Shown in pieces: positions 1,795 to 60,100 of a DNA stretch of 64,000 nucleotides; within the stretch, counting starts at the first letter, position 1; every line of letters starts with the position of its first letter. The position numbers and the translations under genes were made by a program. The stretch spans positions 5,828,001 to 5,892,000 of the forward strand of contig OU015569.1 of assembly GCA_907165135.1 (NCBI GenBank), in the 5' to 3' direction. The stretch is from Oikopleura dioica (lineage: Eukaryota > Animalia > Chordata). The notes beneath the pieces are model-generated. The model was not told the origin of the DNA and ran no database searches. It saw nothing but the letters and a program-made list of their open reading frames with translations.

Positions 1795-3219
1795 TTAGTC
1801 CGAGTCCTCTGCGAGGACAGTCTGGCGACTTTGGAATGAGTATTGAGAAGCTGTATCTTCCATTTCTGAATCCATCATTCGGCCTCCGACATTTCGTTTA
1901 ATGCCGTAAAGAGAAGCGTCATTTGTTGAATCGTCGCTAAAAACGTAAATATAAAACAGTGATGTTTTAACTACTACCTGTCGGAGCTATCGCCGAAAAG
2001 CAAGTCCGCTCCACTACGGCTATTATTTAGCGACGCGAATTGACTAGAACTGGGCTGAAAAGAAGGCTGTTCAGGCTGATATTGACGTCGATTATAGGAT
2101 GACAAGTCGTATTGATCACGGGTCTCGGTTAGCCTTGATGCGTTCAGAATATCGGCCTGCGTTAGCATGAGAGGACTCTGAAGAATCCGTAAGTTGTCTA
2201 GACAAAAGTTTAAGCATTTTTACTCTTCTTCCGCTCCCACTCGCAGGGATTATTTCAGACTTAGTAGAGTCAAGGAAGGAATCGTCGCTGTGAACACGAG
2301 TTATATTGATTGTCTTTGATATGTCCGAGCTCAGTGTGGCTGTGACAATCGAAGAGATGAAATTGTCCGACTCAACTTTGAAAACCAAGGGACAACCTTG
2401 ACCCTCTTCGAAGACCTTAATATTTTACATTCTCACAGAAATGTAAGCATAAAGGAATTGTTACTTTTACTTCAGCATCTTCCATCAAATCTTCCCATAG
2501 TTTTACAGCTGCTCGAAGCTCTTTCAATGAAAACGTCAGATGGTCACTCATCGGCTGGAAGATCTCCAACTCTTCGGATGTTATCGCGACCTGGGACTTG
2601 ACACTCGATTTGACAGTGTTTTCATCGTACGATTTGAGATGCAGTTTTCCATCATCCATGTACATAGTCGCTTCCAGAATCCCGCGAGGAAAGGTAGAGA
2701 GTTCTCCATCGATTACTGACAGTGGGCAGACCATAAATGGAACTCTTTCCTCGAGGTCGAAAGTAGAAGCGAGGTTGTCCGGGTCATACACTTCGAAGTC
2801 GTAGTGTTTCGTCCAATGTTTCGTGCCGATGAATTTGTATGAAAAATGTTCCGCCGAGAAGTCGATTTCGATTTTATCAAGGAATTTCGAGATGTTCATA
2901 GCTGAAACTTTGATCAAGTAGCGCAGCGGGAGACTGATCTTGACATCATCGCAATACACGGATGTTTGTGATTGCGAAGTGTTGTAACTTTCGCTTATGT
3001 CGAAGAACTCGGGGGTAAGAATCATTTGCATACAAACTGATCGGGAGATATTTGACGTTTGAAGCTCAAATGATTGTTACGAAATTACATTGGAACTCAC
3101 TCGATTACCTTTAATCCTTGGACGTCATACGGCTCGATTTGAACGTGAGGACCAATTTTGACGAGGGTTTTTAGCGTTTTTACGAACTCCGTAATATTAT
3201 AATCAGGGACGATCCACAT
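1795..3219 (-). CDS. RAD9: RAD9 subunit of the 9-1-1 checkpoint clamp
   Basis: N-terminus FVKTLKTLVKIGPHVQIEP / SNISRSVCMQMILTPEFF, internal LTFSLKELRA, and C-terminal VLAEDSD* matching the RAD9 tail (PVLAEDSEGEG). Confidence 0.8.
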
Positions 3220-57100: not shown

Positions 57101-60100
57101 CGGCATTGGCGAATTCAACGTTGAGCACGACTCGGCACACGGATTCCCGCAGGATCTACAAAAGCGCCATTACAAATTGCAGCAATTACCTCATGTTGCT
57201 CACCTGTACTGCTTTCCACCATCGCACTGCATTGGACAGCGCTCATTGTTTCTCCATCTGATGGAAATGCCTCTTTTCCCGCATTCAGCCGCGTAATCGG
57301 CGATCGCCGTGCAAAGACACTCGCAGTCTCCACCAACGTCGCAGCTGCAAGCATCGTACACACATCGCCCGTAGAAGTCTTCAGGTGGGACTAGAGCATG
57401 ACAGGCTTCGAATTCGGGCGATTTTATGACGCTACAAGCGCCTCGGGACCAGACCAGACGATCAGCATGTGGACATTGGTAATCGACTACTCCCATTGAG
57501 GTTACACTTGGGCAAGATGGCGAGAGTTTCCAAGAGTTGGCGAAATCTTAGAAAGATATGAAGAAAAACAATAAACGCGAATAAAAGAGTTTATCTTTCT
57601 CGTTTCCTGTTGGGTTAACTTCTATGGATCCGCGTTGGCTTTTATATTCATCGATCAGCATGCCATTGTAATCCCCGCAGAGTCCTTCTACAACACCCCT
57701 GTTGATTGGCTCTAGTCGGACATAAACCCTTGTTCCGCCATCCCACAGAACAGTTAGTCCTCTCGTAGCAGCGGAGACGAGAACGAATACTCCAGCACGA
57801 TCAATTATGACCTCTTCCGTCACCGCCTGATTGTATCTATCGGAAATTCCATATTTCCTCGGGATACGGATAGCCTTATTATTCACTGTTATTTCTCGGT
57901 GCCTCATCAAGTGAACTTGGATAGGGCCGATTGTGACGTACACCGACTTCGTACACGTAACACCTTCCTCTAGTTTTAAATTTCAAACTTCTTTTACGAA
58001 GTTGTATTTTCAACTATGCCTGATGATCCACAAGCAACATTCTCGGCCATGACTCGAAACTGTCCCTCGAGATGCTGCGTTAAAATATAAGTACACGCGC
58101 CATGGAAGGAAAATTCGGCGCCGTCAAATGTTCGATAGTGAGGATCGCCGACGGCGGAGCATGTAGCAGAGCACTTGAGATTTGTGCACTCCCAGTGACG
58201 GCGACTGCATTTACATGTGTTGCAGTCGCGTGTAATGGTTTCTCCTGGCTGATAGTGTTTTCCGTGGTGCAGGCAGGGGCATTCTTCGGGTTCTATACAC
58301 TGGCCCTCTTGCCGAACGTAGCCTTCGGGACATTTGCACCCCGACCAACGCGGTCCTGAGCACACAGCCTTTCATTGAGATTGCGGAACAAGCTTTAATT
58401 TATTTTATATTGATTCTGAAAACTTTTCCTGAAGAGCTGGATTCAGAAAATGTAGACTGTTGCACGTAGGCTCACACTCTGTGATGTTAAAAGATGGGAT
58501 CATTTTTCCTGGGCACGTTAGTACTTTTCCACAAAGCTCGTCAGAGCATACCCAATCTCCGCCTTTGCATGTGCTTAACCAATTTGTAAGCAATTATAGA
58601 TTTACGATGCATATTTTGTCAATATGTAGATTAACTATGTAAAACTGAGAGCGTCGAATGATGACCACTCACTCGGACAGTAGACTGACCTATCTTGTGC
58701 CTCATGTTCGGGACTTATCAAAATAGACCAAATCCAGTCCAAGTGTCGTGGGCTATGAGAGGATGAAGAAGTGAGTAACAGTACATATGATTGGATTATC
58801 TGCCTGTTGCGCTGTATTGAGTAGTGATAATCCACGAACGTCGAGTGAAACGACCGTAGATGGACTATAGATTGACCTATCTTCGCATTCGATGGCAGAA
58901 AATAGGTCAAAACTATTCCATTCACGGACAATAATTGTTTTTTCTCTTGATCTCTAGACGAAAAAACATTTACACTGAGACACAAATAGTCGTGTTGGGG
59001 CGCTAACCATTTCATGCAGCCTTTGTAGAGCACTGTGCCAGGAGGACTTACCTAAATTAAGCCATAATTATCGTTGACAGCTATGAATAGTATCTCTAGA
59101 GAAATACTTACGTTTCCTTTATGATCAGAACACGTGCATTCTTCTGGCTCAATGCAGTAGGGGCTTTCCAGTCCTGAAATTACGAGTCCTTCTGGGCAGA
59201 CGCATCCTGGCCGGCAGATGTGATCACTGTTGTTCTCGCTGCCATCTTCACAATCACTTGCGCAGCTATTACAAGGAGGTACACATGGGGAAAACTCAGT
59301 GCCGACAGGACATTCAGGTTTACACCGAGAGACTATCTTGGCGAGTTCTTCGTTAGAGTTGAGTCGTGCTTTGAAAAAATTGCTTTTTAGCAGGGATCGC
59401 GAAAATCGTTTTTATTATGACGGGAAAGAGCGTCACCAGGCGGCGGATGTTCTTCCGATCGAAGATCCGACGCACTGGATCCAATGAAGAAGAAAATCGA
59501 TCCCGGTCCTGCAATGGGATCGTACGAAACTTATTAATGGACACATACTCGTACTACCCACAAGTTTTCCTGCACCACAGTAGACGTCAACGCAGTGGTG
59601 AAGAAACATCTTCTCCAGCTCAATTTCAAGGTGACACTCTTGCGAGATCTTAAAGAGATCGTCACACACCATTCGAGCAAAGGGCTCCATTTCGGGATAC
59701 GTGAGGCATGATTCGGGCATCTTGTTCTCGATTGGCGCCGGTTCACATATTTCTCCGCCAATTTCGAAGCCATAGCGATTGACAAAATTATCAGAAATCG
59801 CTTCAACATCCCCAGCAGGAGTCGTGAAGTCGTCTTTCTTATTCCAGCTGAATGTTCCACAAAGTCCTGTAAAAATATAAAAATAACTTCTCTCGCGGGC
59901 TTTTACCTTTGACTTTTTTTGACCAAAAGGGCTCAAGTCTTATGTGAAGAAGTTGTTGTGCAAGACTCCAATCAATATCAAACCCGAATCCTACGATGGT
60001 GACAACGAAGTCCGTGGCCTGCGTGATGGATAGATCTCTATTTCTGAACGGAAACGCCACTTGGTAACCATCGAGAAGCAGGATTAAGTTTGCAGCAAGG

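Follow-up and report, generated by a model that had tools for sequence, protein, structure and literature searches.

Candidate paralogous miRNA hairpins in a SCO-spondin intron of Oikopleura dioica

Intronic miRNAs and the SCO-spondin locus

Canonical sense-intronic miRNA clusters of animals carry paralogous hairpins of about 30-35 bp in one intron and on the host strand, with the mature arm more conserved than the star arm and the star arm more than the loop, a seed region identical in the paralogs, covariation in the basal stem and, downstream, a CNNC-type motif. Two hairpins, A and C, located in a 434-nt intron of a SCO-spondin-like gene of Oikopleura dioica, share this profile, the downstream motif being a candidate one. 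The locus differs from such clusters in its extra short conserved stems (B and D) and conserved linkers, in small-RNA products that are here predicted only, and in a family seen here only in larvacean-type sequences.

Most O. dioica miRNAs, according to what Fu, Adamski and Thompson reportedly described in 2008, are antisense to their host genes; in contrast to this majority, the A/C cluster is sense-intronic and would represent the minority arrangement. In other respects it fits the miRNA repertoire of the same organism group, with its lineage-specific families, many of them within protein-coding genes. The 69 O. dioica miRNAs deposited in miRBase have been called a list that is probably far from complete (PMC5399378).

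Two other kinds of intronic hairpins come close. Like mirtrons, A and C are of intronic origin and dependent on host transcription, but their ends do not coincide with splice sites; they lie 80-340 nt inside the 434-nt intron and possess basal stems suited to Drosha. A mirtron identity was rejected on the internal position of the hairpins and on termini not defined by splice sites. Like hairpins derived from MITEs, A and C are long inverted repeats in an intron; unlike them, they occur as two copies in 64 Mb, within one intron, and are conserved at the orthologous site elsewhere. The element is of an ordinary kind, not new in kind, and its value is that of a well-supported and testable candidate.

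Host intron and the structures encoded in it

The domains of the host gene were searched exon by exon, as separate ORFs. The Pfam matches on successive ORFs revealed the architecture of SCO-spondin, i.e., VWD/TIL modules, six LDLa repeats and then many TSP1/TIL repeats. Positions are those of the window, the whole 64,000-nt stretch of DNA analysed.

61.5-58.0 kb, minus strand: VWD, VWF and TIL matches
56.4-55.5 kb, minus strand: six LDLa matches
55.5-49.0 kb, minus strand: TSP1, TIL and LDLa matches
58574..59007, minus strand: host intron of the SCO-spondin-like gene (434 nt, GT..AG, phase 2)

The assignment of the 434-nt intron to SCO-spondin, made in the initial annotation from the letters of the window, was confirmed. 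On the minus strand, the intron begins with GT at 59007 and ends with AG at 58574; the upstream exon ends in ...GCMK at 59008, and the Cys-rich motif (C)TCKGGDWVC is continued by the next exon across the junction. The identical exon junction was present in two other lineages recovered from metagenomes (L023 and L037). The two introns adjoining the 434-nt intron are about 60 nt each. A 132-aa in-frame ORF running through the intron was ruled out as coding because the L023 ortholog has stop codons there. Co-expression in Reissner-fibre-secreting cells, proposed in the initial annotation, would be a possibility; the one expression statement encountered for O. dioica is that of a preprint, which reports strong sco-spondin expression in endostyle cells (bioRxiv 10.64898/2026.03.31.715263) for a gene that may be the present one.

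The following structures were identified in the intron.

58645..58967, minus strand: whole conserved block (D, C, B, A and linkers), delimited by region-by-region identity to L023
58665..58752, minus strand: hairpin A, candidate pri/pre-miRNA (stem and basal stem together about 35 bp)
58675..58696, minus strand: predicted mature 3p of A, 22 nt, ends estimated from stem geometry (+/-2 nt)
58719..58740, minus strand: predicted 5p (star) arm of A, pairing with the 3p via several G-U pairs
58653..58657, minus strand: TCGAC downstream of A, 19 nt past the predicted 3p end, containing the CNNC-type CGAC
58854..58927, minus strand: hairpin C, candidate pri/pre-miRNA and paralog of A, based on the fold and orthologs
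58862..58883, minus strand: predicted mature 3p of C, 22 nt, with estimated ends
58898..58919, minus strand: predicted 5p (star) arm of C, in which substitutions preserve pairing
58840..58844, minus strand: TCGAC downstream of C, 19 nt past the predicted 3p end
58792..58835, minus strand: stem-loop B, a 25-nt loop closed by the 9-bp stem GGATTATC / GATAATCC (z -0.5)
58937..58967, minus strand: stem-loop D, 8-bp A/U-rich stem (z -1.9)

Hairpin A, whose stem measures about 35 bp and whose loop has 21 nt, folded at -27.8 kcal/mol with six G-U pairs on the minus strand versus -14.9 kcal/mol (z +0.7) on the plus strand, in agreement with the earlier claim that it pairs on the host strand; taken alone, hairpin A of the window has a modest z of -2.05. 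Hairpin C, equally borne out as a stem-loop, is about 29-31 bp long including the basal stem and has an 8-12-nt loop. Its minus strand folded at -24.3 kcal/mol (z -3.9), with none of 200 shuffles folding as well, and at -33.0 kcal/mol when the basal stem was included, the plus strand of C giving -20.0 kcal/mol. The gene-sense strand folded better in all five hairpins examined (A and C of the window, A and C of L023, and the L037 hairpin).

The two hairpins were evaluated using miRNA gene criteria of the Ambros 2003 / MirGeneDB type. Both A and C have at least 16 paired bases between arms of about 22 nt and no large internal loops; in the predicted 3p of A, 17 of 22 positions are paired, interrupted by a bulge of 1 nt and another of 2 nt, and C is similar. 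Both also form a stem of about three helical turns with a basal stem, and their terminal loops are no shorter than 8-10 nt. The machinery expected for such substrates is represented in the genome by three loci, each with two adjacent RNase III domain matches, as expected for Drosha and Dicer, these tandem loci being considered as a set. The predicted 3p guide starts with A, U being more usual, which is a point against the miRNA reading.

The TCGAC motif is found at a fixed distance from the hairpins and was invariant in six of the seven aligned ones, the extract of the remaining one (L148) stopping inside the motif. CNNC motifs usually lie in a window 16-18 nt downstream; here the distance is 19 nt, counted from a 3p end whose cut site is predicted only. 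TCGAC may act as a Microprocessor (SRSF3-type) cue. No basal UG was seen by eye at the expected place in hairpin A.

Four stem-loops had initially been annotated in the intron. A and C stood up to the analysis, and B (9 bp) and D (8 bp) proved not comparable with them. A Drosha substrate requires a stem of about 33-35 bp, and B and D were rejected as miRNA hairpins because stems of 8-9 bp are far below this length. Stem B is kept in L023, with an 8-nt loop, and stem D in L023 and L148, with a shorter loop; neither was found in L037. Conservation between the two closer lineages also reaches the linkers, stems B and D and the A loop (81%), and thus goes beyond a minimal miRNA model. The short stems within the conserved block may represent accessory pri-miRNA structure or relics.

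Genomic uniqueness and conservation of hairpins A and C

The 16-mer AAGATAGGTCARTCTA from the 3' arm, said at the outset to be shared by A and C, is present at just two positions of the 64.28-Mb genome, and both lie in this intron. Its near-matches with two mismatches were genome-wide no commoner than those of the reversed control pattern, and when every one of them was folded, none formed a hairpin. The search of the genome with the covariance model R1 revealed A and C as the sole loci; model scores were 86-103 bits for the sense strand (101 for hairpin A) versus 14-23 bits for the opposite strand. The initial annotation had named dispersed transposon fragments as a finding that would speak against miRNAs, and no dispersed copies were detected by BLAST with each hairpin or by the pattern and covariance-model searches. 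Since AAGATAGGTCARTCTA is unique to the locus and the model finds only two copies, A and C are not transposon fragments, and a dispersed-repeat or MITE origin was rejected as both copies reside in the same intron. The homology between A and C is limited to the hairpin and about 20 nt. Tandem Repeats Finder detected no tandem array in the intron because the repeat units have diverged outside the hairpins.

An Rfam 15 cmscan of positions 57500-60000 with E up to 10 gave no family match, only a chance nadA hit elsewhere being noted. With this result and the uniqueness in the genome, no derivation from a repeat, tRNA, rRNA or snoRNA was indicated. The 3' arm sequence was not encountered in an Oikopleura or miRNA context in the literature searched and was absent from the supplements of tunicate miRNA papers that were searched. 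Set against the Rfam 15 models, the family is a well-supported new candidate.

A second lineage with the orthologous intron (L023) was recovered from marine-metagenome contigs. Only 13 of 45 four-fold degenerate sites in the flanking exons were identical between the window and the L023 lineage, a saturated level, so the metagenome contigs do not come from near-identical populations. L037 is far more distant, with an exon protein identity of roughly 40-60% (by eye), and its intron of about 1350 nt, in the orthologous position, carries one hairpin of the family near the 5' end, in which A-like and C-like features are combined. None of the contigs looked human.

L023:2826-2928: ortholog of A, -34.2 kcal/mol in the sense orientation (z -4.7), opposite strand -21.3 kcal/mol
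L023:2663-2758: ortholog of C, -39.4 kcal/mol in the sense orientation (z -7.5), opposite strand -34.3 kcal/mol
L037:2510-2614: family hairpin, 98.6 bits with the model, -25.7 kcal/mol sense versus -16.9 kcal/mol opposite

The scan of metagenomes with the 16-mer gave at least 120 stretches, almost all of them chance matches in unrelated DNA, and among the matches listed, the hairpin was present in L037 only. A protein-word search with the L023 upstream-exon ORF retrieved only a 97% identical relative, and the same search for further lineages with the L037 upstream ORF found nothing. The P0003 contigs L151 and L152 belong to another species and contain 187 nt of the intron 3' end, in which the hairpin was not found. 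The protein of L026 is 93% identical to that of the L023 lineage, and its contig begins at the downstream exon. The comparison set comprised three lineages and seven aligned sequences, effectively five independent hairpins; the conservation statistics are thin because of this sampling.

The 3' arms of C and A are identical to those of L023 at 28/28 and 26/28 positions, respectively, and a stretch of 24 nt in the C 3' arm does not vary among the window, L023, L148 and L037, the last of these being distant. On the 5' side, counted together with the basal stem, identity to L023 is 85% in A and 74% in C, the loop of C is 50% identical, and the intron outside the conserved block is unalignable (23-24% identity). 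For the C-type, none of the 22 columns of the 3' arm varied, as against 5 of 21 on the 5' side (p 0.02, Fisher test); the asymmetry of A-type arms was not significant in the aligned hairpins. The first 11 nt of the 3' arm were invariant in all seven. The mature arm is the most conserved part of the hairpin across the three lineages.

The 5' arms change mostly by wobble-compatible substitutions, such as C to U opposite G in the C-type hairpins of L148 and L037. One U-G wobble was invariant in 7/7 aligned sequences and six other pairs were G-U in some of them. RNAalifold predicted 27 pairs, six with compensatory changes (the consensus having 24-27 pairs), and 97.6% of alignment cells were paired versus 24-45% with the partners slid. 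Double changes were found in four basal-stem pairs, and none of 500 shuffles reached the observed covariation score. The conserved arm with a compensating partner strand, described initially from A and C of the window, was in this way seen across orthologs in two other lineages. As judged from the alignment, the hairpins vary in the way that canonical miRNA genes would if the 3p were their dominant product.

Interpretation of the locus and its significance

Hairpins A and C are probably miRNA genes because distant relatives have kept them near-unchanged, whereas the intron around them has diverged beyond alignment. The explanation adopted with good, though not full, confidence is that they are paralogous canonical (Drosha/Dicer-type) miRNA genes, sense-oriented in one SCO-spondin intron. 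The proposal of a duplicated miRNA family on the host strand is retained for A and C, given their unique locus, arm conservation and orthologous intron, and dropped for B and D; the candidate family is likely lineage-specific. Being in the sense orientation inside the intron, A and C would be transcribed as part of the SCO-spondin pre-mRNA. In each hairpin, Microprocessor cleavage would fall about one helical turn up from the basal junction, Dicer would take off the terminal loop, and the 3' arm, beginning at or close to AAGAUAGG, would become the loaded guide with the 5' arm as the passenger. As the first 11 nt of the 3' arm are common to both, A and C would share one seed and one set of targets in their putative regulatory role.

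The conserved RNA structures might instead serve the host pre-mRNA without giving rise to any small RNA, by bridging the splice sites or by binding splicing or transport factors. The length of the intron (434 nt, compared with about 60 nt for its neighbors) and the conservation of the whole 320-nt block with B, D and the linkers, beyond the miRNA-like arms, are in line with this role. It predicts, however, covariation on both arms, whereas 24 nt of one arm stand unchanged in three lineages and the other arm drifts, and the stem length, basal-stem covariation and fixed downstream motif suit a Microprocessor substrate. In addition, the hairpin near the 5' end of the L037 intron would not bridge its splice sites. 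A role of this kind is rather unlikely. It is very unlikely that the functional transcripts are antisense to SCO-spondin, i.e., that the miRNAs are encoded on the plus strand. Antisense intronic miRNAs are reportedly predominant in O. dioica, and the plus strand also gives good folds for C (-20.0 kcal/mol) and its L023 ortholog (-34.3 kcal/mol), but hairpin A of the window has no comparable fold there, each of the five hairpins is weaker than in the sense orientation, G-U pairs, both the invariant one and the variable ones, turn into A-C mismatches, and the R1 scores drop to the low values of the opposite strand.

The conservation could also act at the DNA level, with the arms being sites of an intronic enhancer. 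The 3' arm contains TAGGTCA, an extended nuclear-receptor half-site, the half-site consensus being AGGTCA; this AGGTCA belongs to the invariant stretch of the arm, the reverse complement of TAGGTCA is present in the 5' arm of C, and the whole block is conserved. The 5' arm of A has nevertheless lost the half-site and keeps its RNA pairing via G-U, the basal stems covary without sequence conservation, the conserved 24-28 nt far exceed a half-site, and the strand asymmetry of folding would be meaningless for double-stranded DNA, so that an enhancer is scarcely to be expected. A neutral relic, originating from a recent tandem duplication of a palindrome or transposon fragment and having no function, would account for A and C being clearly duplicates of one unit. 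This is close to refuted, as there are no further genomic copies, the A-C homology covers just the hairpin with its short flank, and both hairpins persist at the orthologous site in lineages whose neutral sites have reached saturation.

A broader version of the miRNA explanation for A and C, which is speculative and on balance doubtful, regards the block of about 320 nt as an ancient larvacean-specific pri-miRNA module that has kept the SCO-spondin intron in place despite the extreme turnover of introns in Oikopleura. In such a module, B, D and the loop of A would be Microprocessor accessories, and the family would be tied to SCO-spondin-secreting cells of the endostyle or Reissner-fibre type. 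The locus would also exemplify a functional element that may guard its intron against loss, in a genome well known for the turnover of its introns. The miRNA repertoire of larvaceans is heavily remodelled, and a new family would add to the incomplete O. dioica list. If A and C are indeed miRNA genes, a family frozen across saturated lineages and always located in the same SCO-spondin intron would be a clean marker of larvacean miRNA evolution and would provide a handle on regulation linked to SCO-spondin-secreting tissues.

Host gene and hairpin-bearing intron

The initial annotation had named the host gene SCO-spondin, and the domains found by a Pfam search of the minus-strand ORFs, with exons taken individually, agreed with it. 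On that strand, the stretch 61.5-58.0 kb encoded VWD, VWF and TIL domains, 56.4-55.5 kb encoded six repeats of the LDL-receptor class A type, and a 1761-aa exon at 55.5-50.2 kb carried TSP1, TIL and LDLa repeats, with further TSP1/TIL domains downstream. Judged from the ORFs, this order is the SCO-spondin architecture. Strong sco-spondin expression was reported in O. dioica endostyle cells (2026 preprint, bioRxiv 10.64898/2026.03.31.715263), and Reissner's fibre has been described in this species as well (Holmberg and Olsson 1984, listed among the references of PMC8261243). The initial annotation had proposed that the miRNAs would be co-expressed with SCO-spondin in cells secreting this fibre.

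Features of the intron
59007-58574, minus strand: SCO-spondin intron with the hairpins, 434 nt, GT from 59007, AG ending at 58574
58752-58665, minus strand: hairpin A, -27.8 kcal/mol versus -14.9 (z +0.7) on the plus strand
58927-58854, minus strand: hairpin C, -24.3 kcal/mol, z -3.9, equalled by 0 of 200 shuffles
within the 434-nt intron, minus strand: stem-loop B, 9-bp stem, 25-nt loop, z -0.5
within the 434-nt intron, minus strand: stem-loop D, 8-bp A/U stem, z -1.9

The proposed intron had both GT..AG borders and a Cys-rich motif continuous over the junction: the upstream exon ended with ...YKGCMK at 59008 and the downstream exon resumed with (C)TCKGGDWVCSDELC, thus completing a motif known from the neighbouring TIL/VWC modules. 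Each of the two adjacent introns was only ~60 nt long. A 132-aa in-frame ORF running across the hairpin intron was rejected as coding, being unconserved and interrupted by stops in the orthologous metagenome contig L023.

Two observations concern the neighbouring exons. In the 60-nt intron at 58369-58428 (minus strand; exon junction ...ALQ / AVCSGPRW...), the sole frame-preserving register retaining an AG acceptor begins with GA, not GT, and the L023 lineage lacks an intron here, its coding sequence continuing uninterrupted, so that the lineages differ in the presence of a non-canonical intron. A 44-nt micro-exon (59008-59051, minus strand) separates the 434-nt intron from a 60-nt one; its last ~20 nt (TACAAAGGCTGCAT.AAATG) were near-identical even in the distant contig L037, while the adjoining coding sequence was saturated at silent sites; this could reflect a splicing or pri-miRNA constraint extending into the exon.

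Folding, kinship and uniqueness of the hairpins

Four back-to-back stem-loops had been proposed, of which A and C proved to be long hairpins and B and D are unfit as miRNA precursors because of their short stems. The expected pairing of A on the host strand through G-U was recovered, six G-U pairs accounting for its difference in folding energy between strands. With the basal stem included, C reached -33.0 kcal/mol. Compared with shuffled sequences, the intron as a whole folded somewhat better on the minus (z -2.45) than on the plus strand (z -1.71).

The homology between A and C covered the hairpin and ~20 nt downstream, the remainder of both units being at noise level, which indicates an old duplication with only the hairpins retained; Tandem Repeats Finder detected no array at these units. 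In the 64.28-Mb assembly (19 contigs), no hairpin matched anything other than itself. The claim that C shares its 3' arm with A held, as the 16-mer AAGATAGGTCARTCTA occurred exactly in both and nowhere else in the genome (two occurrences). Allowing up to two mismatches gave 52 matches, while the reversed control pattern gave 103; in no case did the near-matches fetched and folded (loci L005-L022) pair the motif into a hairpin. A genome search with a covariance model of the A/C family returned no loci besides A and C. Dispersed transposon fragments, named in the initial annotation as grounds for refutation, were therefore rejected, no further copies being found by the genome, 16-mer and covariance-model searches.

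Conservation in other lineages

A word search of marine metagenome assemblies with the 123-aa exon ORF directly downstream (57994-58365) revealed fragments 87% identical to it. In four contigs (L023, L024, L025 and L148) this exon junction recurred, with an intron of ~490 nt. Of the four-fold degenerate sites in the exons on either side, only 13 of 45 agreed between the window and the L023 lineage, a saturated level; the adjacent 60-nt intron could not be aligned by eye, and identity in alignment columns was 23-24% over the 5' and 3' parts of the hairpin intron. Inside this otherwise diverged intron lay a conserved block of 320 nt.

Identity of parts of the block to L023
C 3' arm: 28/28
A 3' arm: 26/28
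5' sides of A and C: 74-85%
C loop: 50%
A loop (58698-58718): 81%
linkers: 41-80%

Conservation of the A loop, whose first bases (GATAA) are also present in L037, could point to a site bound by a regulator of processing. At ~540-545 of L025, a Tara contig, G replaces C in GTCC of the A 3' arm and breaks one G-C pair, a change that reflects polymorphism in the population or else an error of assembly.

A metagenome scan with the 16-mer gave at least 120 stretches, mostly spurious, with one true homolog, L037, among the matches listed. Protein identity of its flanking exons, estimated by eye, was only about 40-60%, and its intron of ~1350 nt sits at the same codon (YKGCIK|). A single A/C-family hairpin (98.6 bits) was located near the intron 5' end, with a 3' arm equal to the C-type arm over 24 nt and an A-like loop start. 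Downstream of it there is another long, imperfect hairpin (~2390-2470, minus strand), whose sequence is unrelated; after it comes a near-copy of the tail (…GCTAA.ATCGACAGTAAC…) trailing the first one. This second hairpin may represent a further miRNA of the cluster, diverged or different.

Seven hairpins (window A and C, L023 A and C, L025 A, L148 C and L037) were aligned. RNAalifold predicted 27 pairs, six with compensatory double changes. In a 24-pair stem, 97.6% of cells were paired versus 24-45% with partners slid by 1-3 columns, and 0 of 500 shuffles reached the observed covariation score or doubly-changed-cell count. Four doubly changed pairs all lay in the basal stem, which spans about one helical turn; upper-stem variation was one-sided, via G-U, and one U-G wobble was invariant in all seven. 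The anticipated conserved arm with a compensating partner was thus recognizable, the 3' arm being frozen and the 5' arm drifting yet pairing.

Interpretation of the hairpin pair

The frozen arm, drifting partner, diverged loop and covarying basal stem, in a locus that is unique in the genome and constant in its intron position, form a canonical-miRNA profile, and A and C are probably canonical miRNA genes in which the 3p product dominates. The main rival, in which the hairpins have a structural function in the host pre-mRNA and no small RNAs are made, is improbable. It would fit the conservation of linkers, A loop and stems B and D, but the freeze affects one arm only (C-type variable columns: 3' arm 0/22, 5' arm 5/21; Fisher p 0.02; the A-type difference was not significant with two sequences), and L037 manages with a single hairpin in a 1.35-kb intron.

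Antisense (plus-strand) miRNAs are unlikely: the gene-sense strand folded better in five of five independent hairpins, and the covariance model scored 86-103 bits on the gene-sense versus 14-23 bits on the opposite strand. A DNA-level enhancer at the conserved arms might be suspected from TAGGTCA, resembling an extended nuclear-receptor half-site, in the invariant 3' arm (58873-58883 and 58686-58696, minus strand); given the RNA-level signals, the likeness is probably coincidental and such an enhancer unlikely, as is a neutral relic.

Regarding the miRNA reading, the first 11 nt of the 3' arm are common to both paralogs, and A and C would therefore share the seed of the predicted 3p. All hairpins covering the site carried an invariant TCGAC 19 nt beyond the predicted 3p end. 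This sequence includes a CNNC-type motif, which in Microprocessor substrates occupies the 16-18-nt position, and lies near that position relative to the predicted cut site. The genome has RNase III domains in tandem, two adjacent hits each, at three loci (G000 C5:7368738-7369644, C2:6653667-6654849 and C5:13224586-13225560), which are the expected Drosha/Dicer-class genes; two in-frame TAA codons in one match probably mark a small intron.

The O. dioica miRNA repertoire of 69 entries is thought incomplete (PMC5399378). Rfam 15 gave no family match to the hairpin intron region, and the 3' arm sequence was not found in a relevant context in the papers and supplements searched; the family may already bear an odi-miR name. 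Named or not, the two hairpins are an ordinary kind of element, of a class already known, and make a solid and testable candidate pair of conserved larvacean miRNAs.
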